This document shows positions 12,054-42,274 of a stretch of 64,000 nt of DNA, piece after piece. The stretch is from contig JBLDXI010000029.1 of assembly GCA_047495785.1 (NCBI GenBank), forward strand, positions 3,720,001-3,784,000. Reading direction: 5' to 3'. The DNA is from Lepidodermella squamata. Lineage: Eukaryota > Animalia > Gastrotricha. The stretch's first letter is position 1. Each line of letters opens with the position of its first letter. The position numbers and the translations under genes were made by a program. The notes under the pieces are model-generated. The model made no database searches, was not told where the DNA came from, and saw only the letters and a list, made by a program, of their open reading frames with translations.

Positions 12054-15000
12054 TTAATCGTCTTTGGCTATAAGCTCCAGCCTATGCTTTAATTCAGCAA
12101 AAGTCGGCCTTTCGTCAATATTCGAAGCCCAGCATGGCACCATCACCATTTCATACCTAGCAAAGTGACAGTAGCTTTTACGGATATAGCCAAGTGATGG
12201 CTTACACATTTTCAGGGCAAATTGGAGGGCGATCGAGCCGACAACCATCCATGACTCTCATCGCCACGTCAGCGTTTGACAACTCCTTATAAGGAATGTA
12301 CTGGCAGTCTGGAAAAAGCAAAATTAGATTGATTGATTTAGGAAGACGCTTACAATGAGCCTATTAACTTACATGTGAACATTTCCCACATGACCACTCC
12401 AAAAGACCACACGTCGCTTTTCCTGAGGAAAACATGAAGCCGGATGGATTCAGGCGGGTGCCATCGAACAGGAATAATCCGATTTGAAGAGCACCGGTAG
12501 TACAGCTCGTTTTCGTCAATAGTCCTCGACATTCCAAAGTCAGAGATTTTCAAAACCTCCCCCGATGAGACAAGCACGTTGCGACATGCCAGATCTCGGT
12601 GCAGACAGTTTCGTTCTGATAAATAAGCCATGCCGCTGCAAATCTGTTGACAGTACCCGAACAACTCTTCGATATTCTTAGGATAGACACTTTTTCGGAG
12701 GAAAGAATGCAAATCACCTCTTTCCATGAATGGCGTGATTATTCCGACTTCTTCGCCGTAGAAAGCGACCCCGTACAACTCGAGGACGTTCTCGTGAATG
12801 AAATCTCTCATTAACAAGGCCTCCTTAAAAAATTGGGTCAATTCGCGTTCCGAAGATGGCATTACAATCTTGAACCCGACCAGCTCATCATTTGTCCCGT
12901 TTTCAGACGTAAGCACAGCTCGATAGACGCATCCGAACTGACCATGGCCGCATTGTTCCAACAACTTGAGGTTGGTAGATTTCACAATCACGCTTTCGAT
13001 TTCTGTCAGCAAATCGCCGGAGCATTGGTACATGAGTTTGTTAAGATCTTTTGTTTTCCCAGAGTCCTCTGAACTTTTCCCGCTATCTTTTTTTGCTTTT
13101 CTGTACTTTCGTATAAGGTATAATGAAGCAGCTATAGCTAGCACGGTTAAGGCGATGAGTCCTCCAATAATGCCGTAAATATAATCTGAAGAGAAGAAAT
13201 ACTTTGCAAGTGATTAAATAGTTAACGAATTTTACCTGGAAGATTCTGACTTTCTGCCTTATCTGGTTGTACGCTGGTAGTTTCCAGGTACTCAGGGATA
13301 TTTTGAGCAGTTGTTGTATTAACTGTAGTATTTGCAGTAGTTGCTGTTGTTTCAGGCTTGATAATGGCGGATCTTTCATTAGAAAAACACGCTTCAGATT
13401 GAAGATCCCATTCATGAGGATAGTCTATACAAGCCATGGCCTTTTTGAGCCATTTCATTCGAGGGAGGAGGCTCACAAACCGGGCCGGCTCGTCAGATAG
13501 GCAGCTACTGGTTTGGTAGCTATGTGAGAAAATGCCGATCGGAACCACTGTTTCGCCGGTTTTCTTAACTGCATCCGCAGCACTCTTCACGAAGAGTATG
13601 GAACCATCAGCCATGTCGCATTTCGGATATTTCGAAGTCGGGTTGAAGCAAAACGTTTTGTTACCGCAGACGGATATGGTACCAGTAACGTAATAGGTGT
13701 AGATATTCGTACTCGTGGAATTGTACGCCGTCCTGCGGTCAAGCATGGCATACGCTGGTAGACCCCACAATATCATCTGAAAATAATAGATCAGATGATT
13801 TAATCAGAGAAAAATTGCCCCAGATAGCATATATATAGGCTGTTAAAACTTGATCGTTCTCATTCTCAAAGTATCGCTGATTGAATTAGTGTAAGAATTG
13901 TGAAGGTTTGCCAGTTGTAAAAGCTAAATTGCATTTTCATTTCCAGATAATATCAAAAATGGGGTTTTTGAGAATGAATGATTAGAATCTTGTTTCTTTT
14001 TTATCATTACTTAGGGCAAAATGACAATTCCGGCGAAACTTGATGTCTTCGCTTGATGGCTCCGATTCTACAACGCCAAACTTTGAAATAATTCGATTTG
14101 AAAGAAACCAAACTGCCTGATAACTTTCAACATCCGGAGCATACATGACGGTTAAGCTTAGAAACTATCGATTCTCTAATATATGTTAGAGCACCGAGAT
14201 TTGATTCTAATAGTGAAAACGCGTAATTTGAAAAAACCCGCGATAACTCTCTGCTCTTAAAACTTCTTAAAACTTTCACCTGGATCTCACTGAGATGTGA
14301 ATTATGCATATCTTTTAGCGGAACCAAAGATGCTGCAGCGGAACCAAATTTGCATTTTGCGGAACCACTGTTGAAAGATGCCAATCATTTTTGAATAATT
14401 CTACCAGTTTAAAGCGAAGCATGTGTTCTGAATTGAACACTCTGTCTTATAGAGATTCTTACGCTGAATTCATGAGCTAATGATTTTTTCCGAATTATCG
14501 AGGTCAATCTTGACCTGCAAGAAATATCCGAAAAGTGATTTCGTGCCACTAGAAAATTCCAAAATTTGGTTCCGCTACGGCAAATTAGGTTCCGCTCACC
14601 GTAAATTTTGCTCAGGTAAAAGGAAATCAATTTTTGAAATCAACCGTCCCGGCACGCCCCGGCGCGGATAGTTATCGTGAAAATTAAGAGAAAAAATGAC
14701 CTTTTTTCAATGCATTGGTCTAGCCACATGTTGCTTTAAATGAAGCTGAGATTTGTTTCACATCTCAACCTTTATCTATGATCAGGAATTTCGGGTTAAT
14801 ACTCACCCTCAGCTAACAGTTGCGTATAAAACACACTGTAATATGTAGCAAACATCTTCGAAAACAGAGAACTTATGCTTTGGACGATGAGGCCGGGTCT
14901 TAATTGTCTTAGCTTTTTGAAACCACTGGCACCTGAAAACTTAAATTTACCTGGCTATCGGATAATAAATTGACAGGGTGTTCGGCAGATGATGTGAATA

Positions 15001-17136
15001 TCTGCTCACGAGTTCGAAGTACAGTAACGACGCCGTCTGTTAAGGCCTTTGTTACGGTTAGATTCCGAGCATTAAAGTTGATGATGGTGTCATTTCCTTC
15101 TGGGGCACATTCCCGCAGGGTAACCAACATGTAAAAATCGACAAAGGTCGCTAGGCATGGTTTGTCAAGTGCCGCGTGTGCAATGCGCCTTTCAAAATAG
15201 AACTGGACAGCGGTAAGTCTTGGCCCATTAGTTGCAAGAGATGACAACCTATTCTCACACTGTGAAGGAATTGATGATCGGTGAAGGTAGCAGCATGCCA
15301 TTTGCAGCTGTGCCAAGTCACTCGAGGATAAAACCGACCGATAAGCAGCTATGCAGGAGTAGATATCTAGCTGAATGGCCCGGCCATCCAAACCTTTGCT
15401 GCCGAATTCGATATTCGTAAAATTTTTGTTCGATGCAAATATCGACGATTCATTAAATTGGTAGTAGACGCCATGTCGGTTGTGAATCGAAAAGCGACCT
15501 TCTTTTGTTATCATGAACACAATGAAAGACCACTGCTGAACTGGCAGGAAACCGGGTAGGTAAATTTGCCATTTATCTTCGACAGTCACCTCTAAACTGC
15601 CGTTATATTGCTGCCGATAACTAGCGACTAGATTTGGTGCTGAGATGCTCATAATGACCTTTTCCTCGCCAGTCGGTTTGAAGTAAAATGCTATTGTGAA
15701 TTCGGTTAGATTTGAGAACTTTCCATGGATATCGTGAATTCTGAGCAAAAAATTAGATCCTCCATGCGCCGATAATGGGTTATTGAAAGGACCATCATGC
15801 CATATCAGAGTCGCTATCTTACGCAAATCATAGACCATGAACCATGGGCCTAAATCGCGAAAATCGTATTCCCAAGCTACTGGGATGATCATCAATATCG
15901 CAAATGGTCTCGGCCACGGAACAGCTTGAAAAATTCGACAATATAAAATGATGAAAACTAGCTTTTACAACATACCATGGTTTATCGAAGTGATGGTCAA
16001 ATGATGTGGACGGGTGGCTCTATTGATTGTTTCAAGTAGTAAATCCTCTTCGGCCCACATACTTATGCGCTCTAGAATCGCAGCATGGAATCTGCCTGTA
16101 CCATCCTCCCTGAAAGAATCTCTCACTTCTAATGCAGATTTAGGAAGAAAATCTTACGAAGTGTTCACACTGACGACTCTCAATCCAGAATTTCGAAGTA
16201 GACTGCTTATCTGAAGACAACAATATCCATGTATCTACTAAAATAGTCTGATAAGTACTTCATCGCTCGCTGCTGAAGTTGAATCGGAATTGCCATAAAT
16301 ACCGACTGGTAACAAGGTAGATGATGTAATAAGACAAATTCTTCTAAACCTCGGGACTCACTCATCTGCCCAGCCGCATATATTTCGCTGCGATTTTTGG
16401 TGAATGCCACGATTTCTTCCAGCCGCTCGATGCCGAGAGCTTCCTCAAAAATCATGAAGTTAGCGAACATCGCCGTGTCTGAGGCGTCGGGACATATGAC
16501 AAAATCAAACGGTGGTAAAGGAGGTGCCAGAAAGATCTTTTTCGTGAAGTTTGTTTCAGCGAGACTTGGGTCGAAGTTATAACCTGGGGCTTGCGATACA
16601 TGCATAGTGACATTTGTGAAGTTATTTCGAAAAATGATGGCGACAAACGTCCAAGTGGCTAGTGGGATTTCGACCGATGTCATTGATAAAGCCGTCCAAT
16701 CTGGTATATTCCCAACCTTACTTTTGATATGCAGGCGAATTTCCGCCTGATTTCGCGAACCCTTTCGTACAGCTTCTACAACCATGTACCATTCATTTCC
16801 TTCCGTCCTTACTTTGTAAAGTTCAGAATTGGTATTGATTTCAGAATTGAAGAAAAAACAGTGTGTGAAATCCATCGACAGAGGTCGATTGATTCTGTAT
16901 CGAGCCACGGCTTCATATTTGTCATCTATTAGTTGATAGGCCGTGTTGGGATAGCCGAACGGCCCTGGGCGCCAACTAAGCGGTCCGCTCGACCGATAAA
17001 TCAATTTCGCCCCGCGAGGTATCAAGTTTTTCAGGCCATCTCGTGCATCCATCGACACGAAAAGGCTTGCGGTAGAAAGATTCAATGACGCGATGTGAGG
17101 TAGCCAGCTGAACCCGAAAATTGACAAAAAAATCAT
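12054..17136 (-). CDS. RTK type A, copy A1 (~1180 aa): SP-LamG-SEA-like-LamG-pseudo-trypsin-Thr-rich stalk-TM-tyrosine kinase. Exons 17136-16362, 16305-16259, 16210-16158, 16109-15976, 15924-14951, 13776-13236, 13185-12373, 12308-12206, 12156-12054
   Basis: Nine phase-consistent exons give an open 3543-nt CDS. TM is YIYGIIGGLIALTVLAIAASLYLI. Kinase motifs: GHGQFGCV, VGFK, HRDLACRN, DFG, YY, SDVWSFG, RPTF. Exon structure matches A2. Confidence 0.88.
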
Positions 17137-17225
17137 CGTCTAAAACTGTCTAAAAATAAAACTTTCCCTAGAACAGAATTTTTATTAACAAAACCAGATG
17201 GCTTGCTTTTAATCGAATTTCTTTA

Positions 17226-17325
17226 TTAAACAGCTGTCATCTGTTCAATTCGAGTTAATAAATCACTGAAATTAGGTCTGGCCTCAGGGTCATGCGACCA
17301 ACACAGTTCGACAACATCTGCGAAT
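17226..17325 (-). pseudogene. Orphan last exon of a third type-B RTK copy (B')
   Basis: Translates FADVVELCWSHDPEARPNFSDLLTRIEQMTAV*, paralogous to the last exons of B1 (22777-22675) and B2. The upstream B exons are absent. Confidence 0.85.
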
Positions 17326-17823
17326 CTGAATAATAAGCAATGTTTTATTCCCAAAAATTAAAGTTAAGCACCGGCCACGGGTGGGCTTATGGCGCATCAG
17401 ATATATATAACTCGTACGTACGTGTTTTCTGCATACAGGATAGGATAATATTATAATGAATCTGATTATTATAATGATTCTGATTATTTTACTAATTCTG
17501 ATTATTTTACTAATTAATTGTTGGTAGGGTATGTGTGAATGTTTAACGTTTTTAAGGGGCGTCATTCCCTTCTGGGGCACACTCCTGTAGAGTTAGCAAC
17601 ATGTAAAAATCGACAATGATCGCTAGGCATGGTTTGTCGAGTGCCGCGTGCGAAATGCGCCTAACGAACTTGAACCCGAGTGCGGTCGGTTTTGGCCCAT
17701 TAGTTGCAAGCTCTGACACGCTATTCGCACAAAATGCAGGAGTTGCAGATTTGTGAAGGTGGCAGCAGGCCGTTTGCAATTCAGCCAACTCGCTCGAGGA
17801 TAAAACTGACCGATAAGCAGCTA

Positions 17824-18683
17824 CACCTTTTTTCCTTTGCAATTTCATTATTTTTATTAAAGAAACACGCGTTTATTTTTTCATGATTATCAGCGTATTC
17901 ATTTTATTCATTTTCTTACTTTTTTCTTCCTAAGGATTTACTCGATCTTCGAAGGTTCGCTGTATGCGAATACGAAACCCAAATGGGATGAATTATATAT
18001 CAAATTGAAGCTAGAGATCTGATCTATCTAGCTGTCAAATTAGAATACTGGATGCCATTTTGCTCTTGAATGTATTCAACGTTTTTGCCGACTGGTTGAT
18101 CGGAAAGTTTCTTCTGATTTTACTTACAATGATGTTTATTTTTCAACAGATAACTACTAAGGAACTATTCTATTACTTAGTCTTCGCTAATTTCATCATT
18201 TCATGATGAAACCAAAGCAATATTTGTGAAAACTACCTCAGCACCCGCGTAAGCTATTGCCCAAAATGCTACTAAAGCCAAATTTTTTGAGGTTCTATCG
18301 CTTCTACTCGAGATATCACCTTCGCCTGATTGTTCTAATCATTTTTGGGGAGGAGGGAGGGGCCTTTTACCTATAAAATATAAAAACTACCCAAGGAAAA
18401 CATCTTTGTAGTTCATTCTACTTACTGCTTAGTTTCTGCGAAACAAATAATGATTTTGCCGATCTGATCGCATATTTGAAAAGATTATATATCTAGCTTC
18501 AATTTGATATATAATTCATCCCATTCGGGTTCCGTATTCGCATACAGCGAACCTTTGAAGATCGAGTAAATTCTTAGGTAGAAAAAAGTAAGAAAATGAA
18601 TAAAATGAATACGCTGATGATCATGAAAAAATAAACGCGTTTTTCTTTAATAAAAATAATGAAATTGCAAAGGAAAAAAGGTG
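17824..18683. mobile_element. Non-autonomous long-TIR DNA transposon (TA target, Tc1/mariner-like) inserted in a psi-A' exon
   Basis: ~190-bp TIRs (17824-18015 and 18492-18683). TA is duplicated at 17822-17823 and 18684-18685. The empty site GCAGC-TA-TGCAGG is visible in paralog A1 (~15345-15357). Confidence 0.93.
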
Positions 18684-19600
18684 TATGCAGGCGTAGAAAT
18701 CTAGCGACATCGCCCTGCCATCCAAGCCTTTGCTGCCGAATTCGATATTCGTAAAATTTTTGTTCGATGCCAATATCGACGATTCATTAAATTGGTAGTA
18801 GATGCCATGTCGGTTGTGAATCGAAAAACGACCTTCTTTTGTCATCATGAACACGACGAAAGACCACTGCTGAAGTGGCAGGAAACCGGGTAGGAAAATT
18901 TGCCATTGACTAGCGACGAGCTTTGATGCTGAGATGCTCATAATGACCTTTTCCTCGCCTGTCGGTTTGAAGTAGAAAGATATGGTTATTTCGATCAGAT
19001 TCGGGAATTTTCGATCAATATTTGCGACTCTTAGTACATGGTTAAATCCTCCAAGCGCTGATCGTAAGTCATTGAAAGGACCGACGTGCCAAATATCAGC
19101 CGTAATCCTTTGTTTATCACAGGCTAGGAACCATGGGCTCATGTCACGAAAACCGTATTCCCAAGCTACTGGGATGATCATCAATATCGCAAATGGTCTC
19201 GGCCACGGAACAGCTTAGAAAATTCTACAATATAAGATGAGAAACGACTTCATAAACCTACCATGACTTATCGAAGTGATAGTCAAGTTATGTTGTCTGG
19301 TGGCTCTATTGATCGTTTCGAGTAGCATATTCTCCCCAGTCCACATATTGCTGTTTATCCTTTAAATGCCCCAATTGCTTGTGAGGTCTATTTTGATGAA
19401 AGAAATCTTACGAAGCGATCACACTGACGACTTTGAATCCTGAATTTCGAAGAAGACCACTGATCTAAAGACAAACATATTATGTTGATCATAAATAATA
19501 GAATAATGTATTTATATAAAACTGAGAGGTACCTCATCATCGCTTGTGGCTGAAGTAGAAGTTTCCTGTAATCTCAACTGGTAACAATGTGGATGGATTA

Positions 19601-21337
19601 CAGTGCTCCCTCGATAAAAGCACTGGGTCGGGAGCCAGACCCGGTCTTTTAACAAGGGAAAGCTATAACGAGGGCTGTAATTGAATGCAGGAGCTAAAAA
19701 TAGACCGTTTCTACGCCTTAAGACAGTTGCCATGCCAACGCGCAGAAAGAGACGGACACGGATTACGTGTCATTACAAATTTCGCTCGCTAAAGGCTGTT
19801 AAACAATGACACTATGAATCATTAGTTCTTCAAGTTTTTATTCTTATTTGCCAGGGCGGCTTTGATTTAACTGGTTGGCCTTGTTTTTTTACTCTAATTT
19901 TAAGTCCTGCCTGGGGTTAACGAATAAAAAAAACCTGGAATCTCATTATTTCAATTTACTTCAAAAATGCCAAGCTCGTCCGATTTCGCAAACAAATTTC
20001 ATTTGAAATCACAGCTCATTTGACAAAATCAATCACCTTGGTCAAGATTGACCAGAATACTTCTGAATCACCAGCAAATTCAGCCAAACATGCTCAAGAT
20101 AATGCTGTGTTCAATTCATAACTCATGCTTAATTCGTAGAATTATTTAAAAAACAATCTGAAATTTGAAACAATTAGGATGAAAAATGTATTTTCGACAA
20201 TTTTTTCGCGGTTAACCTGACTTTTTCTTTTTTAAATTCATCGAATTAATGGCATTGAGCAATCACGGACCGATTTCACGGCATAAGACGTGTGGTTCCG
20301 TCAAGAGGGCGTTTAGATTGAATGGAATACATTTGCATCTTCTCAGGCGTGATTTCGTTTTCATTCGACTGGCCTATTAAGATCCGAGCAAGGTAAAAAT
20401 CGGGCAGAAGCTCCCGCCGCCCCTCCTCGGGATGTTGCGATTTTCAAAGTCAAAATCCAATGATTAAAAGTTGTAAAAAAAACCGTAAAATTGCCAAGGC
20501 GTTGAGCAATGAAATCGTAGAGTAGTGGCAGCCAGTTAGATCAGGCCTATCGACTATCGAAAATCGGCTAATAATCCAATAACTTAGGACAACTGGAACG
20601 AATGAAAACGATCTAATTTTATGAGAATAAATCCATGTATCGAAATTGAAATAAATCGTAAAACCAGGACGCGATTCTTCATGATTACGCAACACAGCCG
20701 GGAACAAAATTGGGGAAACAGTTTCCTTAAAAAAATCACGAATTAAATCCTAATTTGATCATGCTAATAATGCTTGTAAATTGCAAGAGATTTTCTGGCC
20801 GGGAAAAAGCTAAAACTTGAAAAATCAGGGCAATTCAGATGAGTCTTTTAGTTGATCAGCAATTGGCCTGAGGGAAAATCAGCAAATCAAGGAGAGTTAA
20901 GATTGACGGGCATTTTTATAGTTATTGAAATAAATTGCTGATTTTGTCTGATTAATTGGCGTAATTTCTGATAGAAAAGTTTAACAAAAAAGCAGGAAGA
21001 CTCGCAGCGCGACTTGAGTGGCAGCTAATCCCCACACTCTGTTGCGTAATCACAGCCATTTCAAAGCCACAAGAACAGCTTAATGCACTGATGATCTTTC
21101 AACTCGTTTGAACTAAACTTGAAATAACTGGATCTCCCAAAACCACGACAACGCGCCGCTAGGTTTCCAGGAACGCTTTATTATTTTAATTTTTCACGCT
21201 TAATTTTTTTAATCTATCAAAAAATTATTATTTGTTTAAATAAAAATTTACAACTAATTTATTTAGCAGGGTCCAAAATTACGGTATACAAACGAGGGAG
21301 TTCTTTTAAGGAGGGTGCCACTAACGAGGGAGCACTG
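19601..21337. mobile_element. Non-autonomous pogo/Tigger-like (Tc1/mariner superfamily) element in psi-A' intron 1
   Basis: TA|CAGTGCTCCCTCG...CGAGGGAGCACTG|TA, with internal AACGAGGG subrepeats. The paralogous introns are only ~55 nt. Confidence 0.85.
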
Positions 21338-22209
21338 TATCAATTGGTTGTCTCAATAAAATGGAGACTCACTCATCTATGTCCAGCTGCATATATTTCG
21401 CTGCGATTTTTGTTAAAAGCCACGATTTCTTCCAGTTGCTCGAAGCTGAGAGTCTCCTCAAAAATCATGAAGTTGGCGAACATCTTTGTGTCCGATGCGT
21501 GGTTATAGACGATCAAATCAAACGGCGGTAAAGGAGCCGCAAGAAAGAGCTTTTTCGTGAAGTTTGTTTCAGCGAGACTCGGGTCGAGGTCGTAACCTGG
21601 GGCCTGTGATACATGCATAATGACATTTGTGAAGTTATTTCGGAAAATGATTGCGACAAATGTCCAAGTGGCTAACGGAATTTCGACCAAGTCATTGATA
21701 ACGCCGTCCAATCTGGTATATTGCTAACCGAATTTCTGATCCGCAGGCGAGTTTCCACCAATGATCCCGAACTCTTTTGTTCAGCGTCTACAACAATGTA
21801 CCATTGGTTTCCCTACGTTCTTAGACTGTAAAAGAAAAAACAAGTTGTAGAAAAAACAGTGCGTGAAATCTGTCATCTATTGACAGCGGTTTGTCGATTT
21901 CATACAACGCCAGGCCACTAATAACTATACCAACTTGTCCTTGGTAGGACGTGTTGGGATAGCCAAACGGCACTGGGCCCCAACTGAGAGGCCGTCCATA
22001 GCCTTGAACAAATTTAGCTCCGCCAGGTATCAAGTTCTTCAGGCAATCTCGTGCATCCATCGACACAAAAAGGCTTGCGGAAGAAAGATTCAATGACGCG
22101 ATCTGTGGCAGCAAGCTGGTCCCGAGATATAACGAAAAAATCCTTCTTGAAATTTTCCTAAAAATATATTTTTATCGAAACTGCTGCAGTCGATATGGTA
22201 TGAGTTTAA

Positions 22210-22600
22210 CAAGAAAAAAAAACATTTTATTTGATTTTGGTAACGTTTCAGTACCAACTTGTACCACCATCAGACACAAAAGTTACAACTGATTTTTTGC
22301 ATAGCGCAGCCACTTTTTACCGAGGCCGAGAAAATCTCACAATAGAGCCCGTAATTTGAATAAGGGAACGCGAACATATTTTTCGGCGAATATTTTTCAT
22401 TTAGGAAATAAAAAATATTGGCCCAAAAAGTTTGTCCTTTTGTGCGGGCAATTCGTTTGTGCTCTATTGTGCAATTTTCGTGGCTACGGTAAAAAGTGAC
22501 TGCGCTATGTGTGATTATACAGTAATTTTCTTTCTTTTTATTCTAGTCTGAAGTAGGCACCAAAACATTAATAAAAATCAAATATTATTGTCAGCGCAAG
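22210..22600. mobile_element. Foldback/MITE in the gap between B1 and psi-A'
   Basis: Inverted arms CATAGCGCAGCCACTTTTTACCG (22300) and CGGTAAAAAGTGACTGCGCTATG (to 22509), with degenerate outer arms. It is absent from the two paralogous gaps. Confidence 0.75.
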
Positions 22601-22674: not shown

Positions 22675-25600
22675 CTAATAATGAGCTATCAACTGTTCAA
22701 TTTGAGTTAATATATGACTAAAATCGGGTCTGTTCTCAGGGTTATGACACCAACACGGCTCGATAACATCTGTGAATCTAAAAAAAGCTAAATTTACGAT
22801 ATTTTCTTAGATTATTAACGGAGCTCACGTTATTTCAGGGCATTGAATAGGCCGATTCAGGCGGAGGCCGCTGCAAACTTTGACTATGACGTCCGAGTTT
22901 TCCTTCAGGTCGCTGTAGGGTGACTCTTGGCATCCTAAAACATATAATCACAGAGTGTAGAAAAAAATCAGTGAAATCTGTATAATGGCAAATAAATTAT
23001 AAGAGTGTCGACCCAGTAAGATATTTTATAATACCAAAACCAGAACCAAATCCGCTTTTACCAGAAAATATTTCCCACATGACGACTCCAAAAGACCAAA
23101 CATCAGCTGAGGTGGAACATACGTTCCGTTCGAAAGATTCAGGTGGATGCCACCTGACTGGAATAGGTTTACTAGACCCATCGTATATGGATGAGAAATT
23201 GTCTTCTTGCGATGCCAGAATTCTGGCCAGGCCAAAGTCGGAGATTTTAAGTATTTCCTCGTCAGAAACAAGAACATTGCGGCAAGCGAGATCGCGATGA
23301 ACGCAATTCTTCTGAGATAAATACACCATTCCCGAACAGATCTGACGGCTGAAATCCATCAGTTTGAAAACATCGACGTCATCGATCGCTTTGAGATATG
23401 ATGCAAGAGCTCCATTCTTCATGAACGGGACAATTAAATTCGGCTCACCTCGCGACAGTATCGTCCCAGTCAGTTTAAGAACATTTTCATGGTCAAATTT
23501 ACTCATTACCGAAATTTCGTGAACTAGAGCTGTTGCTTCACATCGATCTGTTTTGATAGTTTTGATAGCTACTGATAGTTCCGGCTTGTCAGGCTGTTTC
23601 AGAGTTCCGTGCCAAACTTTGCTGAAGTAGCCCTCACTAATGACCGATCCTTGTTCCAGCCAGGAGTCTTGAAGTTCGAGCGATAGCAGTAAATTGAGAT
23701 CGTTATTATCCAAGTCCATTCGCTGCACCATATCTCGAAAGTCTATTGCATCGATGTATTTCGAACATTTTTGCTGGTGAGGCATCCTTGCAACAACAGC
23801 CTTTCTTCGATGATACAGCCAGACACCCAAAACCGCGAACAAAGTGGCGACACAAAGCGCCACAGCTAACAGAATTATCGCCAAATCTGATATTCCATCT
23901 GAAAATACGAAAAATTTGTTACAACGTTACAATTTGACAATAAGACTGGTTTTAGAGGTAAAAAGACCGATTTGGCGGAAAGAAACCGCATTTTGATGGC
24001 AATTTCTGAATATTCGTATTTGGTGGCGGAAGCCCAGAAATCATTAATTTCTCCCTGAAAAAGCTTTAGATCTGGAGGCTGGGATGATACCTGAATCAAC
24101 CGAAACTTCAAATCTCGTTTGGTTGGAAAGATACGTCTCTGTTGAAGTCAATCCAACGGTCGCTTTGCCATAATCTGGAGTGTATACCAATCTCTTAACG
24201 CATGAATCCCATTGTAGAAGCGCTTTAGCCGGCAAACAAGCTCGTTGGTCCAGGATCCAATCGGAATACGCCAGTAAATTCACAAATAGTATAACGTTCG
24301 CCGTAGCCCGCCTCTTGTTTTTCCTTGAGTAAACTCCAATCTTGAGAATTGAAATCGTAAAACCGTTGGCCACTCTCTAGCGACTTTTTACCTGGATTAA
24401 TCTGGGCCCTATAAGGCTTGCAGGGTTGAAAGGCTCGAAAAGAACCAGTGCTGCACCTTCAACTAAATTCATTTCTCTGACATCGCTTTCAGAATTGGCG
24501 ACAAAACATAGTAGAGAATGATCTCGCCATCCAAGAGCTAAATTGCAAGCCTCTGATGTCATTAGTCGACCTAAAATGTAATAATACGTCTTGCCACTCC
24601 TGAAGCCATACACTAATGCTGTGCCATTCCAATCTACAACTTGGTGGTAGCCACTGATCAATATTTGAACAGCGAATTTTAGCGAATTCACCGAAGTGTT
24701 CTGGGGCCAAAACGCTATGCCTAAATCCTCGTTTTCAACATGTTGCGTGGAAATGAGAGATTGGACACATTGCGCTGTTGACATGACGACAAATCGGCTG
24801 ATTCTTGAAGTTAAACAATCTCTCCCAATTTGGTCTATAAAAGAGTGGGCAATGTCGAATGCCCCGAGGTCTTTATCAGTTGTGACTGACGGAATGTCTC
24901 GGAAATTGTTTTTACTGCCCGTCGCATCGTGGAAATAACGGCATGCGTCTTGAACTTGAACGAGTTCTTCGAAACTCAACGGAGCTGCGTAAAGTCCACA
25001 GCAAGAAATAAAACCGGTGGTACCTATGGCATCTGTTCCGATTCGTAGGCCTTCAATAGCTTCTCCGAGAGTAAAATCTGAGTCTCCCGTGATTTCCATG
25101 GCCATACTATCTTCGAGGAACACAGAAAGCTTCGCACCCTGGAAAATCAATGCTATGAACTGCCAAGTGTTGGGAACTATCAGCCCGGCTAAGATCAACG
25201 GGGAGGATCTGTTGTTGAAGTCTATCATGAGATCGCCTTTCGCTGCTATAATACTGACGTTGCAAGGGCTAAATTGCAGGATTTGCTGCGTTGTTAGATC
25301 TATGAACAAGTAGAAGAACACTGTGATAGAATTTGCTTCGAACATGTTCGGAAAATCGATAAAAATTTGATGCGAGAGTGGAGTGCTTGTTTGCAGGTCG
25401 TAGAAAGGTCCAGTTTCAAAGCTATGATAAGGAATTCGTTTGCGATTGATCGCCGGCCCGTGAAGTCTGTTCGGTCCGACATCGGACCACTCACGATTCT
25501 CATTCAACGGCCAGAGACCAATGAGCGCAAACGTCCTCGGCCAAACAACTCCTTAAAATGATATCAAGTATCAACAAATAGTTTCTCAACTGCGTTCACC

Positions 25601-30990: not shown

Positions 30991-31219
30991 TACTTCTCTT
31001 GCAGTCGGCTATATTAAAATGTTGTTAAAAAGTTAAAGAGAGCGCGATCTATTCCTATTAACGAGCCCACAAAGCGACGTTTCAGCTCGAATCGGTGGCT
31101 CAATCGAATAGATTTGAGCTGTTATTTACTGAGGTAAACAGTTCAGCTCACAACAAAGCTTTCGATTTCCGATAAATATCAGTAGCTATCCAATAAATAT
31201 CAGCAGTCGAACATGAACT

Positions 31220-32638: not shown

Positions 32639-33180
32639 AAAGCTTCTGCTTTCTTTTGAAGTTGAAGATTCCTGGCAGGTTCTTTCCCGATTAACATGAA
32701 ACCACTCTTGAGTTGTTTTATCAAAAATTATACTAGTTTTCATTAGCTGCCGTTTAATATGCTACGTTTAGGAAAGGAAAGAGCAGAGCAAGCCCAAATT
32801 GCTGGATGGCGTTACAATGTTTCAAAGAAATAACCAAAAAACACATATAAAGCACCAAAAGGGTTCAAACGAAAAATGGAAAGCCATATCAGAAAAATGT
32901 AGCTATAGCTTCATCTCAGCGAAATGAAAATTATGAAGGTTTAAATGATGAAGGAGAGCCTATTATTAACAGTGATTAAAAGCGACGATGGGGCGGAAAT
33001 TTTCCCAGAAGATGATTAAAGTTAGAACGTTTGCCCTTCACTTGCTTCTATTAGCCCATCTTGAATAGAAGCCCAGTTTTTCACCCTTTTTCGGACATTA
33101 AAAATCTAGAAGCGAGGCTAGTATTTCAACATTTACGGTATGCTATACGCAAACTGATCAGTACTCCTTCTACGGTATGA

Positions 33181-36100
33181 TTAATCGTCTTTGGCTACAA
33201 GTTCCAGCCTATGCTTTAAGTCAGAAAAAGTCGGTCTTTCATCGATATTCGAAGCCCAGCATGGCACCATCACCATTTCATACCTAGCAAAGTGACAGTA
33301 GCTTTTACGGATATAGCCATAATAAGTGATGGCTTACACATTTTCAGGGCAAATTGGAGGGCGATCGAGCCGACAACCATCCATGACTCTCATCGCCACG
33401 TCAGCGTTTGACAACTCCGTATAAGGAATGTACTGGCAGTCTGGAAAAAGCAAAATTAGATTGATTGATCCAGGAAGATGCTTACAATGAGCCTATTAAC
33501 TTACATGTGAAAATTTCCCACATGACCACTCCAAAAGACCACACGTCGCTTTTCCTGAGGAAAACATGAAGTCGTATGGATTCAGGCGGGTGCCAGCGAA
33601 CAGGAATAATCCGATTAGAAGAGCACCGGTAGTACAGCTCGTTTTCGTCAATAGTCCTCGACATTCCAAAGTCGGAGATTTTCAAAACCTCCCCCGATGA
33701 GACAAGCACGTTGCGACATGCCAGATCTCGGTGCAGACAGTTACGTTCGGATAAATAAGCCATGCCGCTGCAAATCTGTTGACAGTACCCAAACAATTCT
33801 TCGACATTCTTAGGATTGACACTTTTTCGGAGGAGAGAATGTAAATCTCCTCGTTCCATGAATGGCGTGACTATTCCGACTTCCTCGCCGTAGAATGACA
33901 CCCCGTAAAGCTCGAGGACGTTCTCGTGAATGAAATCTCGCATTAACAAGGCCTCCTTAAAAAACTGGGTCAATTCGCGTTCCGAAGATGGCATGACAAT
34001 CTTGAAGCCAACCAACTGCTCATCATTTGTCTCAGAGGTAAGCACAGCTCGATAGACACATCCGAACTGACCCTGGCCGCATTGTTCCAACAACTTGAGG
34101 TTGGTAGATTTCACAATCACGCTTTCGATTTCTGTCAGCAAATCGCCGGAGCATTGGTACATAAGTTTGTTTAGGTCTTTCGTTTTCCCAGTTTCCTCAG
34201 AACTTTTCCCGCCATCTCTTTTTCCTTTTCTGTACTTTCGTATTAGGTATAGTGAAGCAGCTATAGCTAGAACGGTTAAGGCGATGAGTCCTCCAATAAT
34301 GCCGTAAATAAAATCTGAAGAAATGAAATATTTTCTAGGTGAGAAAATATTTAACAAAATTTACCTGGAAGATTCTGATTTTCTGCCTTATCTGGTTGTA
34401 AGCTGGTAGTTAATAACTCAGGGATATTTGCATCAGTTGTTGCAGTTGTTGTATTATGTAAGTAGTTGTATGTAGTTGTTGTTGTTTCAGGCTTAATAAT
34501 GGCGGATCTTTCATTAGAAAAACACGCTTCAGAGTGAAAATCCCATTCATGAGGGTAGTCTATACAAGTCATGGCCTTTTTGAGCCATTTCATTCGAGGG
34601 AGGAGGCTCATAAACCGGGCCGGCTCGTCAGATAGGCAACTACTGATTTGGAAGCTATGCGAGAAAATGCCGATTGGTATCAGGTTTTCGCCGGTTTTCT
34701 TCACTGAATCCGCGGGGCTCTTTACGAACAGTATAGAACCATCAGCCATGTCACATTTCGGGTATTTTGAAGTCGGATTGAGGCAGAACGTTTCGTTACC
34801 GCAGATGGAAATGGTGCCAGTGACGTAATATGTGTACATCTTCGTCTCAGTGGTGTTGTACCGCGTTCTGCGGTCAAGCATGGCAAACGCTGGTTGACGC
34901 CACAATATTATCTGAAAATGACATAACAGGTGATAGCAATCTGAGAAAATGTGCCCCCTGATAGCAATATAGATATTTTAGGCCGTAAAAACTTCCAGGG
35001 TTGTGATCGAAGTAAAATAGTACGAATGCATTTTTGTCACAACGGTGAACGACCCGATAAGAGCCACATTTTACCTGGCCTAGTCATTACTAAAAGCTAC
35101 TTGTGGCCCGCCAGGATCACGCTTTCAAATGTTTTCAAGGCTCATATTTACACTTTTCTCTTGATCACAACCCCTTTAATCTTTCTCATTCCAGAGTACC
35201 GCTAATGGGGCTGTTGCAAGAATTTTGAAGGTGTGCCAGTTTTTCATCTTATTTTTACGGCTACAACCTTTATCCGTGATCCGTAATTTCGGGTTTATGC
35301 TCCCCTCATAACAAATGTTCGTGATCAGCTAACAGTTGCGCATAAGACACACACTGTAAAGTCTTCGAACCCAAAGAAATTATGTTTTGGAAATTGACTG
35401 AAACTTAGTTGTTCAGTTTTGAAACTACTGGCACTTGTAAAATTAAATTTACCTGGCTATCGGATAATAAACTGACGGGGTATTCGCCAAATGTTGTAAT
35501 TATCTGCTCACGAGTTCGAAGTACAGTAACGACACCGTCTGTCAAGGCCTTCGTTACAGTTAGATTCATAGCATTAAAGTTGATGATGGTGTCATTTCCT
35601 TCTGGGGCACATTCCCGTAGCGTTAGCAACATGTAAAAATCGACAAAGGTCGCTAGGCATGGTTTGTCGAGGTTGGCGTGTGAAATGCGCTTTTCAAAAT
35701 TGAACTGGAAAAAAGTAGGTCTTGGCCCATTAGTTGCAAGCAACGACACGCTATTCTCACAATATGCGAAAGCTGATGATCTGTGAAGGTAGCAGCATGC
35801 CATTTGCAGTTCTGCCAACTCGCTTGAAGATAAAATTGACCGATAAGCAGCTATGCATGAGTAGATATCTAGCTGAATGGCCCGGCCATCCAAACCTTTG
35901 CTGCCGAATTCGATATTCGGAAAGGTTTTGTTCGATGCAAATATCGACGATTCATTATATTGGTAGTAGACGCCATATCGGTTGTGAATCGAAAAACGAC
36001 CTTCTTTTGTCATCATGAACACGATGAAAGACCACTGCTGAAGTGGCAGGAAACCGGGTAGGTAAATTTGCCATTTATCTTCGACTGTCACCTCTAAACT

Positions 36101-37646
36101 GCCGTTATATTGTTGCCGATAACTAGCGACTAGCTTTGGTGCCGAGATGCTCATAATGACCTTCTCCCCGCCAGTCGGTTTGAAGTAGAAAGCTAGAGTT
36201 AATTCGGTTAGATTCGGGAATTTTCGATCGATATCATAGATTCTTAGTAAACTATTAAATCCTCCGAGCGCTGACAACAGGTTATTGAAAGGACCATCAC
36301 GCCAAATCTTAGTCGCCATCTTATACAAATCATAGACCATGAACCATGGGCCTAAATCGCGAAAATCGTATTCCCAGGCTACTGGGATGATGACCAATAT
36401 CGCAAAAGGTCTGGGCCACGGGACGGCTTGAACAATTGAACAATAATTAGGATATTATGATGAAAAAGAGCTCTCATAACATACCATGGCTTATCGAAGT
36501 GATGGTCAAATGATGTGGACGTGTGGCTCTATTGATTGTTTTAAGTAGTAAATCCTCTTCGGCCCACATACTTATGCGCTCTAGAATCGCAGCCTGGAAT
36601 CGGCCTGAACCATCCTCCCTGAAAGAATCTCTCACTTCTAATGCAGATTTAGGAATAAAATCTTACGAAGTGTTCACACTGACGACTTTCAATCCAGAAT
36701 TTTGAAGAAGACTTCTTATCTAGAGACAAAAATATACATTTTTCACTGAAAGAGACTGATAAATACCTCATCGCTTGTGGCTAAAGTCGATTCGGAATTT
36801 CCTGAAATACTGACTGGTAGCAAAGTTAATGAAGTAATAAGGCTAATTCTTCTTAACTTGTGACTCACTCATCTGTCCAGCCGCATATATTTCGCTGCGA
36901 TTTTTGGTGAATGCCACGATTTCTTCCAGCCGTTCGATGCCGAGAGCTTCCTCAAAAATCATGAAGTTCGCGTACATCGCCGCCTCTGAGGCGACGGGAC
37001 ATATGACAAAATCAAACGGTGGTACAGGAGGTGCCAGAAAGATCCTTCTTGTGAAGTTTGTTTCAGCGAGACTTGGGTCGAGGTCGTAACCTGGGGCTTG
37101 CGATACATGCATAGTGACATTTGTGAAGTTATTTCGAAAAATGATGGCGACAAATGTCCAAGTGGCTAACGGAATTTCGACCGATGTCATAGATAAAGCC
37201 GTCCAATCTGGTATATTGCCAACCCTACTTTTGATATGCAGGCGAATTTCCGCCTGATTTCGCGTACTCTTTCGTTCAGCTTCTACAACCATGTACCATT
37301 CATTTCTATCCATGCTTACTTTGTAAAGCGCAGTATTGTAATACATTTCAGAATTCAAGAAAAAGCAGTGCGTGAAATCCATTGACAGCATTTTATCGAT
37401 TTCGTATCGAGCCAATTTAGTGACATATTTTTCAACTTTTAGTTGATGGGCTGTGTCGGGATAGCCAAACGGCCCAGGGCGCCAACTCAGCGGCCCTTTC
37501 GACCCGTAAACATATTTCGCCCCGCCAGGTATCAAGTTTTTCAAACCATCTCGTGCATCCATTGACACGAAAAGGCTTGCGGCAGTAAGATTCAATGACG
37601 CGATCTGGGGAAGCCAGCTGAACCCGAAAAATGCCAAAAAAATCAT
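33181..37646 (-). CDS. RTK type A, copy A2 (~1182 aa). Exons 37646-36869, 36813-36767, 36719-36667, 36618-36485, 36426-35453, 34911-34365, 34314-33505, 33440-33338, 33283-33181
   Basis: Nine phase-consistent exons give an open 3549-nt CDS with the same domains and motifs as A1. Confidence 0.88.
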
Positions 37647-37715
37647 CGTCTAAAATGTCTAAAAATACACATTTTTATTAACGATACTAGATGCTTTACT
37701 TTTGATTTAATATTT

Positions 37716-40700
37716 TTAATAATCAGCCATCATCTGTTCAATGCGAGTTAATAAATCACTGAAATTAGGTCTGTCCTCAGGGTCATGAGACCAGCAAGGT
37801 TCGACGACATCTGCGAATCTGAAAAGCAAAAAAATTATGCGTCATCTTCTTAGATTATTCCGGGGCTCACGTTTTTTCAGGGCAGCGAATAGGTCGATTG
37901 AGGCGTAGGCCGCTGCAAACTTTCACAATGACGTCCGAGTTCTCTTTCAGTTCGCTGTAGGGTGACTCTTGGCATCCTAAAACATAAAAAATCACAAAGT
38001 GTAGAAAACACATGAGGAAGCGTATGAAGTAAGGGGAGGCTATTCATGGTAGCTTTAAACACAGGAAAAATCACAGGAGGACTATTTGGTCCGATAAACT
38101 CGGGACCCTAGGAACCCCGCCTCCCCACCCCCTATCTCCACCTGAAGGATTCTACTTTCTGGATACTTTATGGAATTAGGAAAAATGCAGAAAATCTGTG
38201 GGATATACCTTATTATCGGGCTCAGTCGATATACGTAGCAATATCTTCAATAATATCTAAAAGCCATCATACCAGAAAATATTTCCCACATGACGACTCC
38301 AAAAGACCAAACATCAGCTGAGGTGGAACATACGTTCCGTTCGAAAGATTCAGGTGGATGCCACCTGACTGGAATAGGTTTACTAGACCCATCGTATATG
38401 GATGAGAAATTGTCTTCTTGCGATGCCAGAATTCTGGCCAGGCCAAAGTCGGAGATTTTAAGTATTTCCTCGTCTGAAACAAGAACATTGCGACAGGCAA
38501 GGTCACGATGAATGCAATTCTTCTGAGATAAATACACCATTCCACAACAGATCTGACGGCTGAAATCCAATAGTTTAGAAACATCGACGTTATCGATCGA
38601 TTTGAGATATGATGTCAGAGCTCCATTCTTCATGAACGGGACAATTAAATTCGGCTCACTTCGAGACAGTATCGTCCCAATCATTTTAAGAACATTTTCA
38701 TGGTCAAATTTACTCATAATGAAAATTTCGTTGATTAGAGCTGTCGCGTCGCATCGATCTGTTTTGATAGTTTTGATAGCTACTGATAGTTCCGGCTTGT
38801 CAGGCTGTTTCAGAGTTCCGTGCCAAACTTTGCTGAAGTAGCCCTCACTAATGACCGATCCTTGTTCCAGCCAGGAGTCTTGAAGTTCGAGCGATAGCAG
38901 TAAATTGAGATCGTTATTATCCAAGTCCATGCGCCGCACCATATCTCGAAAGTCTACTGTATCGACGTATTTCGAACATTTTTGTTGGTAATCAGAGGGC
39001 TTCCTTGCCACAGCAACTTTTCTTCGACGATACAGCCAGACACCAAAAACCGCGAACAAAGTGGCGACACAAAGCGAGACGACTGACAGAATTATCGCCC
39101 AATCTAATATTCCATCTAACGAAAAACGAAAAATACATGAAGCCCGTATTTAGGTATTTAGGTGAATTAACGGGAATTAAGAATTAAACTGGATTCAACT
39201 CGAAAGGGTTTTCGATATGAAAGCTGGGATCTTACCCGAATCAGCTGAAACCTCGATCCCCGCTGTATTGAAAAGATATGTCCCTGTTGTAGTGACATAT
39301 TGGCTGATTCCAGCGGTCGCTGTGGTGAAAACTGGAATATAAACGAATCTCTTTACACACGAATCCCATTGAAGAAGTATTTTGGCTGGCAAACAAGCTC
39401 GTTGCTCGAGGATCCAAGTGGAATACGCAAGTAAATTCACGAAAACGATAATATTCTCATGAGCTAACATCTTGTTCTTTTTTGCGTAAATTCCAACCTA
39501 TAGAATTTGGGTCGTTCAACGGTTGAATATTCTATAAAGACTATTACCAGAATTAATCTAGGCCCAATCAGTGTTGCAGGGTTGTAAGGCTCAATCAGAG
39601 CCAACACCGCCCCCTCCATTAGGTCCATTCCTTTGACTTCAAAATTTGCGAAAAAGCATAGCAGAGAATGATTTTGCCATCCTATAGCTGAATTGCATGC
39701 CTCGGTGGTCATCAGTCTACCTGATAGGTAATAGTACTTCGAGCCACTCCTGATGCCATACACCAAAGCTGTGCCGTCCCAATCTACAATTTGGAAACTA
39801 CTGACCGGAATCCCAAGAGAAAATTTCAGCGATTCATATGAAGTGTTTTGCGGTGACAATATCAAGCTGAGATCCTCATTTTCAACATGATGCGTTGAAT
39901 TTAGAGATTGGACGCATTGCGCTGTTGATATGACAACGAATCGACCAATTCTAGCGGCTAAGCAATCTGCAGAAATTTCTTCCAAGAAAGAGCTTGAAAT
40001 TTTGAATTCCGCCAGGCCTGATTCAGCTGAATGGATTGGGAAGTCTCTTGCCATGCTTTTTTCGCCCGCCGGGTCGTGGAAATAGCGGCATGCGTCTTGA
40101 ACTTCCACAAGTTCTTCGAAACTCAACGCAGCGGCGTAAAGTCCACAGCAAGAAATGTAACCTACGATTGCGTTGGCATTGGTACCGATGTGCAGGCCCT
40201 CAATTGTTTCTCCGATAGAAAAATCTGAGCCTCCTGTAATTTCCATAGCCACGCCATCTTCCAGGAATACAGATAGCTTCGGACCATTGAAAATCAATGC
40301 TATGAACTGCCAAGTGTTGGGAAGTAACAGCCCGGCTAAGGTTAACGGCGAAGATCCGTTATTGAAGTCTATCATGAGATCGCCTTTCGCTGCTATAATA
40401 CTGACGTTGCCAGGACTAAATTGCAGGATTTTCTGCATTGTTAGATCTGTGAACAAATAGAATAACACTGTGATAGATTTTGCTTCGAACATGTTCGGAA
40501 AATCGATAATAATTTGATGTGAGAGTGGAGTGCTTGTTTGCAGGTCGTAGAAAGGTCCAGTTTCAAAGCTATTATGATAAGGAATCTCCGGCCCGTGAAG
40601 TCTGTTCGGCCCGACGTCGGACCATTCGCGATGAAAGTTCAACGGCCAGAGACCTGTGAGTGCAAACGTCCTTGGCCAAGTAACTCCTGAAAAATGGTAC

Positions 40701-42274
40701 AAGAGCAACTCGAACACTCACACAACTCAAACTCCAGCTCACCCATTGAAACCTTTGAAACAGTTATTGTACTCATTATGTCTTGCAAGCTCGAAATTTC
40801 TTCCATCTCAGTGGTAATTGTGAGTTCGAAATGACGCCGTAATGTAATGAACAGCTTGGCGATCGTTTCGCTGCAATATTCCTGAATTGTACGTGAGGCA
40901 ATAGCAACTGGCGGTACCTTACCTTGCGGACTCATCAAATGCCGTGACAACCAGGCTATTCAGCGTTACGTTCTCTGCGATTTCAGCATCGGAAACGATC
41001 TGAAAAGCGGGAGATTAAAGCTAGGTAAAGTTCTCCATGAACTAACCTTTTCTTCAACTGCGCGCTTCAACCTAATCGTTTCAGCGCTCAACGGGTTGGC
41101 ATATCCAGGCATCCATGTCTGATTCTTGAGCTTGATCAAGCCGATGACTAGCCCTGTTTCATTGTCGAATAAAATCTCAATCGAAAAGTTATATATCGGC
41201 CTAAAATTTGATTCTACCAACTTTTAGTTGTATAGCCTTGTTTCAAATTGGTTTTGACCATGCTATCCCTTAACTATCATCCCAGGTATGATGAGGGCAG
41301 AGAACGAAATAGGGTGTTCGAGTTGGGGGATATTTTCTGGGGATTTTGCCACGAGTTGTCCGAGATTCGCTTGAAAAAGGAGAGGAAGCGGGGTTTTTTC
41401 AGTCCCGAATTTCGGACCGAAGGGTGGATTTCCGGGTTTTCTTAAGCTGTGGGGGTGCGGTTCTCCCGAATCCCCTGAACTTAGCACTTTGCCGCTAAAC
41501 TGACTTACATATTTGACGGCTGGCCAAATTCGTGTGTCGATCTCGAGTGCCATTTATCAGAGACGAAAGCTCTTCGCTGCTCAGAGTGCTCGAATACAGC
41601 ATCCAGTTAGAAATAGCGTCTTGTGGAGTTACTGACATTTGTCTGTTACTGCCAATGTCGTCGAACCAAAGTCTTGCTGTACCAACATCTAGCAGATATG
41701 AATCGAGAAGCAAAATTTCTTTAACCTTTTCCGAAATTCTTTCAACATAGTAATCTGGACCTTTCGCCACATATAACGTGCTTTTCTTCTGTTTTCTGTT
41801 GTAAGTAATCGCGATGAAATGCCACGTGTTAAAATCGATGATTCTAACATCAAAAATCGTTTCTATTGAACTCGGACTTACTCCGAATCCAACCAGTAGT
41901 CGATCTGGAGGACTTAAAGCGGCCAAATAGCCGCCTCCTCTATTGAAAACGAAGTCGTACAATCCTACATTTTTTGACTGTGAAGCGGAGAAGAAGAAAA
42001 AAGAAATAGTGAAATCGCCAAGCAGGTCCTCCAGACGATACGCTAGCACAAAATAAGAATTTGTGGAAAGCCGCTTGATGGTGTAGGATGTGTTGTAATG
42101 GCCAAAGGGACCTGTCAGCATGGCCGAGGGCACGCTCAGCGATGAGGAGTCTATCAGAGTGTAATTAGTAGGGCTTAGATCCTGAATACCAGCGTCCGAG
42201 TCAAACGCGAAGTGCAAGCGCAATGTCGACTGCACGGCTGCAATGTTAAAAACTGATATTAGGTAGACAAACAT
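37716..42274 (-). CDS. RTK type B, copy B2 (same architecture as B1; one splice acceptor reads CG at 41167-41166)
   Basis: Signal MFVYLISVFNIAAVQS; LamG1; SEA GLIKLKNQTWMPGYANPLSAETIRLKRAVEEK; LamG2 + CLAARIGRFVVISTAQCV (exon 40686-39548); TM; kinase; last exon ends ...RPNFSDLLTRIEQMMADY*. Confidence 0.7.

Follow-up and report, generated by a model that had tools for sequence, protein, structure and literature searches.

Receptor tyrosine kinase genes with LamG-like and inactive S1 protease-like ectodomains in the gastrotrich Lepidodermella squamata

Described systems with related modules

Classes of receptor tyrosine kinases (RTKs) are defined largely by their ectodomains, and no class known to us, or found in the literature and databases that we searched, uses the S1 protease fold. 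Here we analyzed a stretch of 64,000 nucleotides from the gastrotrich Lepidodermella squamata (GenBank assembly GCA_047495785.1, contig JBLDXI010000029.1, positions 3,720,001 to 3,784,000 of the forward strand; hereafter the window, in whose coordinates all positions are given). Its minus strand carries, at 12054-42274, a tandem array of genes of two types, A and B, in which large exons alternate with very short introns: three genes are intact (A1, A2 and B2), one is doubtful (B1) and one copy is decayed. In the gene models the domain order is signal peptide, LamG-like domain, linker of ~80-120 residues, second LamG-like domain, protease-like domain, Thr-rich stalk, one transmembrane (TM) helix and tyrosine kinase. 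Profile comparisons show a type I RTK gene family whose predicted ectodomain core is homologous to extant secreted proteins composed of two LamG domains and a dead S1 domain. A preliminary description of this DNA had regarded the architecture as undescribed, and we likewise met no S1-ectodomain RTK in the literature and databases searched; the fused LamG-LamG-dead-S1-TM-kinase architecture was seen solely in the source genome.

Several described systems share parts with these proteins. HGF and MSP, the ligands of Met and Ron, also use a dead S1 domain for recognition in RTK signaling. However, the dead protease is there on the ligand and here on the receptor, and the window genes lack kringle and PAN domains; the sequence affinity of the relatives described below to HGF was no greater than to other S1 proteases. 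A tandem pair of LamG-type domains is known as the recognition unit of Gas6 and protein S in signaling by TAM receptors, but this pair is on a soluble ligand, and the receptor ectodomain consists of Ig and FNIII domains; the likeness is one of architecture and we claim no sequence kinship. Type II transmembrane serine proteases (hepsin, matriptase, enteropeptidase) have a membrane-anchored S1 domain beside accessory modules (CUB, SEA, LDLa). These proteins are active, have the N-terminus inside the cell, depend on R-IVGG activation and have no kinase, whereas the window genes encode type I proteins with a leader of the cleavable type, a TM helix located C-terminal to the S1-like domain, a dead triad and no IVGG. 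Non-catalytic S1 homologs (protein Z, haptoglobin, azurocidin and arthropod serine protease homologs/masquerade) employ the triad-less S1 fold as a binding protein, and both protein Z and haptoglobin chains were among the fold matches reported below. However, they are soluble, are never fused to a TM kinase and have other accessory domains (Gla/EGF, CCP, clip).

Extracellular modules shuffled onto a cassette of TM helix and tyrosine kinase are familiar from Venus kinase receptors and from RTK families of choanoflagellates and sponges. Domain shuffling has been discussed for the holozoan tyrosine kinome (PMC8662651); the words trypsin, laminin and protease do not occur in the main text of that paper, and the papers that we retrieved on lineage-specific RTKs mentioned no trypsin or S1 ectodomain.

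The membrane-proximal domain and its relatives

A profile of the four exons that encode the second LamG-like domain (LamG2) plus the start of the protease-like domain was searched against 1.84 billion cluster representatives, a library in which the window's own proteins were not included. Only 22 matches were obtained at E 1e-3. The best were unnamed open reading frames (ORFs) from ENA metagenome assemblies, P0001 (E 1.6e-21), P0002, P0003-P0006 and P0017, to which Pfam assigned the order (CUB or LamG)-Laminin_G_3-Trypsin with Trypsin E values of 2e-14 to 7e-24. Their trypsin part matched factor IXa in PDB (1e-28), as well as protein C and plasminogen. The relatives are themselves catalytically dead: TAAHC reads T.AS/R/QC (His57 replaced with Ser, Arg or Gln), and GDSGG reads GDEGA, GDQGS or ADMGI (Ser195 replaced with Glu, Gln or Met). 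Glu in place of Ser195 is shared with the B genes and, in P0004, so is Gln in place of His57.

These proteins resemble the window genes in LamG2, in the dead S1 domain and in a 'W..AC.[LI]P..C' tail, and are collinear with them over ~450 residues. In MAFFT alignments the B genes matched the relatives across the whole domain. The shared flanks comprised LamG2 with an ACR..H linker upstream and a 'W[IL]....AC.[LI]P....C' tail downstream, and this family-specific Cys tail was present in the A genes too. The relatives differ in that their trypsin domain still passes Pfam and that these secreted homologs lack the linker between the LamG domains. No TM helix or kinase followed the gene in the three homolog contigs inspected (P0017, P0006 and P0003), two of which ended directly after it, too soon to include such a region.

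The metagenomic homologs were located on animal-like contigs (L001 5509-7995; L002; L003), with neighboring ORFs containing ANF_receptor, NIDO, Ank, Neur_chan_LBD and multiple CUB domains. Several homolog ORFs terminate at the B-type intron position, after '..RL[IV]Q', and conservation of this intron position between the B genes and the homologs is suggested. Homolog searches for deepening the alignment gave just 1, 2 and 10 matches, the family being too rare or too diverged, and pattern scans of JGI metagenomes with A-type and B-type patterns detected no relatives. A PDB match to ERCC-8 at E 0.11 was rejected as chance.

The spliced domain of A1, A2, B1 and B2 was then aligned by hhalign with a trypsin-only alignment of P0001-P0006 and P0017. 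The full domain of all four sequences gave a probability of 98.0 (E 2.9e-13) over 216 of 263 columns, versus probabilities of 0.1-0.5 (E 0.11-0.78; 9-27 columns) for one reversed and eight column-shuffled controls. With the B genes only, the full domain gave 93.7 (E 1.9e-7; 181 columns); with the A genes only, 89.2 (E 2.2e-6; 81 columns, in the C-terminal half only). When the four sequences were divided, the N-terminal half gave 13.5 (E 0.002; 56 columns) and the C-terminal half 96.9 (E 1.7e-10; 91 columns). A separate profile comparison yielded 91.6 (E 8e-7) for the A-type C-terminal half and 3.7 (E 0.011) for the B-type N-terminal part alone, the latter in the correct register. A protein language-model search, which needs no alignment, placed Trypsin clusters among 25 of the 30 neighbors of the B2 N-terminal part and 27 of the 30 neighbors of the A2 C-terminal half. 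By these comparisons, the membrane-proximal domain descends from an S1 (chymotrypsin-fold) protease, a link made via the intermediate family, and the earlier assignment of a dead S1-family domain is upheld.

Landmarks of the fold were mapped from the MAFFT and hhalign alignments, with chymotrypsin numbering. All motif strings listed in the preliminary description were located in ORFs and spliced models: CLATFVDFYMLLTLREC (A2), CLTSRISRFVVMSTAQC (B1), KCDMADGSILF (A), NLVEGAALVL (B1), the IGIFS...PARF.SLLPRMKWL stretch (A), LILVGIYA..VFVNLLAYSTWI (B2, spanning a 50-nt intron) and, in the kinase, GHGQFGCVY, EALLMRDFIHENVL and PFMERGDL. The order and spacing of the protease landmarks are far beyond chance. 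The C42...C58 segment reads CLATFVDFYMLLTLREC in A and CLAARIGRFVVISTAQC in B, with His57 aligned to Glu in A and Gln in B. C168 and C182 are kept in both types, and C191 and C220 are kept in A and lost in B; thus, by alignment, six canonical S1 cysteines are present in the A type and four (C42, C58, C168 and C182) in the B type, all in predicted disulfides. The CQGDSGG motif (191-197) reads CDMADGS in A and MDLMEGA in B, such that Ser195 is replaced with Asp and Glu, respectively, as had been described, and Gly193 and Asp194 are lost in both. GIVSWG corresponds to IGIFSHS in A and VGIYAKK in B, and PGVYTRV..WI to PARFMSLLPRMKWL and IIVFVNLLAYSTWI. The Asp102 column contains the Asn of an NTS sequon in B and is ambiguous in A. 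The earlier equation of the B-type NEDL with the DIAL motif was not borne out, as both MAFFT and hhalign put NEDL on the GxHD strand (~residues 69-72). No R-IVGG activation site was found in the window genes. Because His57, Ser195, the oxyanion-hole Gly193, Asp194 and the activation cleavage site are all missing, the dead protease is predicted to be unable to cleave.

The C-terminal half of the A2 domain was modeled by AlphaFold from an alignment of 19 rows, true S1 proteases included, and six strands plus a C-terminal helix were obtained at a predicted local distance difference test score (pLDDT) of 71.9. In Foldseek the best 50 matches of this model were all either chains of S1-family members (tPA, thrombin, granzyme M, chymotrypsin) or haptoglobin, itself a dead S1 homolog (TM score 0.45-0.59). 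In a VIA search the best 50 matches among 48,161 representatives were all PA-clan proteases, headed by KLK10 at Z 8.5, HGF beta at 8.3 and protein Z at 8.1; the top S1 rows aligned over chain residues 129-245, which correspond to the C-terminal barrel.

Receptor architecture and possible role of the ectodomain

The two ConA/LamG-like domains proposed previously were both recovered. For the first (LamG1), B2 exon 1 matched Pfam Laminin_G_3 with E 3.1e-5 and 24.6 bits, under the gathering cutoff of 27.6, and this assignment is weakly supported and tentative. The assignment of LamG2 is well supported: the AlphaFold model of the B2 domain is a jelly roll (pLDDT 70-88) that matched lectin-like jelly rolls in Foldseek at E 1e-9, and the homologs exceed the Laminin_G_3 cutoff (P0002, 36.4 bits; P0005, 48.1 bits). 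The linker between them had been labeled a SEA domain. This label found no support: the exon pieces (A2 36486-36617 and two B2 exons), each searched alone, had no Pfam match at E up to 10, and the only likeness to SEA was a loose 'NSLVVTAF' resemblance.

From exon 7 onward, Pfam PK_Tyr_Ser-Thr was detected with E 5.2e-65 in A2 and 6.9e-63 in B2, and the HRDLACRN, DFG and PVRW motifs are intact in both kinase models. Each model is a single open frame with a predicted type I layout, in which the N-terminus is a hydrophobic leader and basic residues come directly after the TM helix (transcripts cover only two kinase introns), in agreement with the proposal of RTKs. The further proposal of a Met-like kinase is unsupported, because EphB1 (148-154 bits) scored above Met (136-143 bits) in a ranking of PDB sequences by score, Pfam detected no Sema, PSI or IPT domain in any ectodomain exon, and the proteins end a few residues past the kinase, without a C-terminal docking tail (the bidentate site of Met/Ron is absent). 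The top PDB match, 'EGFR' 9p9u, was set aside because it is a construct with two kinase domains in tandem, both of which contribute to its summed score.

Transcript data consisted of contigs of a sequencing run (X2) that is probably RNA. At least 99% identity was found for 11 of the 70 X2 contigs placed on A2, and the X2 contigs point to the species studied here or a close one. X2 contigs spliced the A2 kinase exons exactly at the predicted junctions 33504-33441 and 33337-33284 (GT..AG, minus strand), where the sole flanking difference was a synonymous change. The 541-nt intron of A2 was nearly bare except for an internal repeat, and the stretch with the B2-A2 spacer was bare. This intron holds a dispersed repeat (34972-35180) on which many contigs of X2 and of a second run, X1, pile up with loose ends. 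The TM helix begins in the first codons of exon 7, an exon that lacks both an ATG and a leader, and the intron before it (50 nt in the A genes and 120 nt in the B genes; consensus GTAAAT/GTAAGA...YAG) keeps the frame in A1, A2, B1 and B2. If this intron were retained, the frame would run into a stop 3 codons later in the A genes (34355-34364, 13226-13235) and 14-15 codons later in the B genes (39185-39235, 24044-24091), and a secreted isoform consisting of the ectodomain only would result.

Between A1 and A2, the ratio of nonsynonymous to synonymous substitution rates (dN/dS) was 0.50 in the N-terminal half of the pseudo-protease, 0.26 in its C-terminal half, 0.22 in LamG2 and 0.10 in the kinase. 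Between B1 and B2 it was 0.20-0.29 in the pseudo-protease (dS ~0.84) and 0.2-0.3 over the ectodomain. The ectodomain is under purifying selection; it is maintained and not decaying, yet evolves faster than the kinase. The dS of the B pair is ~0.84 across exons of the ectodomain but only 0.13 in exon 7, which encodes the TM helix and kinase (38273-39115 versus 23069-23980), and this drop suggests that the kinase part has recently undergone gene conversion.

In our judgment, the best explanation overall, and quite a probable one, is that a dead LamG-trypsin ectodomain was captured as the ligand-binding part of an RTK. The LamG-LamG-S1 core with its Cys tail descends from the rare secreted family, in which the catalytic triad had already been lost; in this lineage, the core gained the inter-LamG linker and, according to the gene models, a Thr-rich stalk that connects it with a TM helix and a kinase that looks active. 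The dead protease may act as a membrane-proximal protein-binding module, like other dead S1 domains, and together with the two lectin-like domains may capture an extracellular ligand, and ligand-driven dimerization would turn on the kinase. The fast-evolving ectodomain, the slowly evolving kinase and the turnover of genes suggest that the ligand varies and may be non-self or derived from the environment.

Several observations weigh against this explanation. For the membrane-proximal domain no direct Pfam match was obtained at E up to 1 (searches of nine exon ORFs found the kinase and weak LamG only), neither phmmer nor hmmsearch found a trypsin match of the window pieces in PDB, and the language-model search with the A2 N-terminal part returned no Trypsin neighbor; the A-type N-terminal barrel is a tentative assignment made without independent support. 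The A2 model is not fully independent, as S1 proteases were in its alignment; since the Z scores of ~8 are middling and the alignment may have biased the fold, we take it as supporting evidence and not as independent proof. An AlphaFold model of B2 exon 5 (LamG2 plus 80% of the protease-like domain; alignment of 11 rows) had a pLDDT of ~30 in the protease part, and the N-terminal barrel is therefore not confirmed structurally. The glycine-rich loop of the B-type kinase is degenerate (SEGYFSKVW). No read or X2 contig connected an ectodomain exon with the TM/kinase exon, so their linkage rests on gene structure, and ligand binding, dimerization and kinase activity are inferred from sequence.

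Other readings assign the domain a different role, and a ligand-mimic, decoy or bait role is pure conjecture. One, which we regard as unlikely, is that the dead protease is a bait or sensor that captures protease inhibitors (serpin-like or pathogen-derived) or substrates, such that the receptor would report the protease/inhibitor balance or non-self as an innate-immune RTK. The ectodomain dN/dS, 2-5x that of the A kinase, and the birth-and-death turnover in the array fit this role, and dead S1 domains such as protein Z are known to bind serpins. However, the cleft residues 189-195 and 214-220 are heavily replaced, the B type lacks the C191-C220 disulfide, and dN/dS is <1 throughout, with no positive selection demonstrated. 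We would also call unlikely a reading in which the dead protease is the sensing element and its former active-site cleft binds, from other organisms or damaged tissue, inhibitors of proteases, effectors that resemble proteases or peptides that resemble cleavage sites; if true, these genes would represent an unrecognized class of animal RTKs, a diversifying 'protease-mimic' surveillance tied directly to phosphotyrosine signaling.

We give little credence to a second reading, in which the dead protease is a tethered ligand in cis or a dimerization element, similar to HGF beta, that contacts a neighboring receptor or the LamG domains, and the LamG domains bind the true ligand. Its membrane-proximal position and the rank of HGF beta among the top fold matches are consistent with such a role, and in vertebrates both LamG pairs (Gas6/protein S) and dead S1 domains (HGF/MSP) are ligand modules of RTKs. 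However, HGF beta ties with KLK10 and protein Z, among solved proteins the relatives best match factor IX, protein C and plasminogen, and the kinase is not specifically Met-like. The specific affinity to HGF suggested earlier is not supported, and the origin of the domain is plainer than the idea of a convergent mimic would have it, as the whole LamG-LamG-dead-trypsin unit with its Cys tail matches a pre-existing secreted family.

It strikes us as very improbable that ectodomain and kinase are made separately, the former as a secreted protein with LamG and dead-protease domains and the latter as a short TM kinase, with the full-length receptor an artifact of the splice models. The missing bridge from exon 6 to exon 7, the existence of secreted relatives and the possibility of soluble isoforms through retention of the 50-nt intron would agree with this reading, but the TM exon has neither an ATG start nor a signal peptide, and the sites and frame of the pre-TM intron are kept in all four genes. 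Finally, the view that the trypsin likeness is a chance or compositional effect in an unrelated Cys-containing beta domain, for which the missing direct Pfam and PDB matches, the low confidence of the B2 model and the profile probability of the B-type N-terminal part speak, can hardly be correct, given the separation of the full-domain hhalign match from the shuffled controls, the collinearity of the upstream LamG2 and downstream AC.LP..C tail with Pfam-positive Trypsin proteins, and the agreement of language-model and fold searches on S1.

If a captured ectodomain is accepted, the modules that are on the ligand side in vertebrates (the LamG pair in Gas6/protein S, the dead S1 domain in HGF/MSP) are fused here to the receptor, a different solution with the same parts. 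The capture would be clean and datable, as the secreted ancestor family is still extant. Since Pfam does not detect the protease domain, the family would be overlooked by routine annotation. The significance is limited in that shuffling of RTK ectodomains is a familiar theme in invertebrates.

Gene array and other features of the window

Coordinates are given in Table 1. The limits stated in the preliminary description, 12054 and 42274, coincide with the A1 stop codon and the B2 start codon. Gene models were made by hand splicing at GT..AG sites kept between paralogs. The A1, A2 and B2 models have nine exons each, one open frame and 1180-1193 residues, and their introns are mostly 47-64 nt; in A2 all are GT..AG and 47-64 nt except for one of 541 nt, with junctions kept in A1. 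The least certain junction in B2 is the first donor (GTCAGT, 304-nt intron). When B1 was spliced like B2, an in-frame TGA (28836-28834) was present in the linker exon and one intron was 2.8 kb; because of this TGA its status is uncertain, and it may be a pseudogene or use a downstream acceptor.

Table 1. Features of the gene array (window coordinates; exon lists of A2 include the stop codon)
Feature	Coordinates	Strand	Remarks
Gene A2	33181..37646	minus	intact; 1182 aa; splice model, single open frame
A2 exons	37646-36869, 36813-36767, 36719-36667, 36618-36485, 36426-35453, 34911-34365, 34314-33505, 33440-33338, 33283-33181	minus	
A2 signal peptide and first LamG/ConA-like domain	36869..37646	minus	hydrophobic N-terminus MIFLAFFGFSWLPQIASL; homologous to B-type exon 1 (tblastn); LamG assignment tentative
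A2 linker between LamG domains	36485..36813	minus	~78 aa, three mini-exons; previously labeled SEA
A2 second LamG/ConA-like domain	35801..36426	minus	aligns with B-type LamG2 and Laminin_G_3 of P0001-P0006
A2 pseudo-protease, putative N-terminal barrel	35453..35800	minus	eroded; C42-C58 pair CLATFVDFYMLLTLREC; His57 -> Glu
A2 pseudo-protease, C-terminal barrel, C-terminal helix and Cys tail	34501..34911	minus	cysteines 168, 182, 191, 220; CDMADGS for CQGDSGG
A2 TM helix, juxtamembrane segment and tyrosine kinase	33181..34314	minus	three exons; TM helix IYGIIGGLIALTVLAIAASLYLI then RKYRKGKR
Gene A1	12054..17136	minus	intact; 1180 aa; 87% identity to A2, same nine exons
A1 exons	17136-16362, 16305-16259, 16210-16158, 16109-15976, 15924-14951, 13776-13236, 13185-12373, 12308-12206, 12156-12054	minus	
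Gene B2	37716..42274	minus	intact; 1193 aa; splice model; 28% identity to A2 overall
B2 exons	42274-41505, 41200-41047, 40999-40923, 40870-40743, 40686-39548, 39497-39236, 39115-38273, 37976-37871, 37818-37716	minus	
B2 pseudo-protease	39348..40093 (40093-39548 + 39497-39348)	minus	CLAARIGRFVVISTAQC, His57 -> Gln; LMEGAVL, Ser195 -> Glu
Gene B1	22678..30365 (start approximate)	minus	B2 paralog; large exons and kinase open
Decayed A-type copy	17561..22141 (fragments 22141-21379, 19349-18660, 17824-17561)	minus	tblastn, 56-75% identity to A2; ORFs
Relic of B-type last kinase exon	17232..17324	minus	tblastn, 90% identity to B2 residues 1161-1191

The decayed A-type copy stops within the pseudo-protease and has no TM helix or kinase. 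The relic of the B-type last exon precedes the start codon of A1 by ~90 nt, mirroring the B2-to-A2 junction, and tblastn found no further copies elsewhere in the window. The array thus consists of B-A gene pairs in tandem that undergo birth-and-death turnover. Between the stop codon of B2 (37718-37716) and the A2 ATG (37646) lie only 69 nt; this spacer (37647-37715) contains AATAAA ~25 nt upstream of the A2 ATG, followed by TTTTTAG/TTTTAG. The spacer upstream of A1 (17137-17231) has a layout like that of A2, with the B-type last-exon relic, ~90 nt and the ATG. The tight spacing of B2-A2 and relic-A1 implies that the duplicated unit is a B-A pair without room for a promoter, and this layout fits co-transcription or trans-splicing.

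Between A2 and B1, a GC-richer insert (31200-32470) contains ORFs overlapping on both strands, one of which has a 'LKPFKAPGLDGV'-like motif that recalls LINE reverse transcriptase; a 205-aa ORF in it had no Pfam match. An Rfam scan of the window gave no matches. A FLYWCH zinc-finger ORF of 332 aa (E 1e-6) is located at 442-1440 on the plus strand. At 4000-10197 the minus strand encodes a class II myosin heavy chain (Myosin_N plus Myosin_head, E 3e-106; Myosin_tail, E 7e-23), whose head fragment hints weakly at a spiralian source: it scored 433-455 bits with scallop and squid muscle myosins, 382-394 with insect and spider myosins and ~345-391 with vertebrate myosins.

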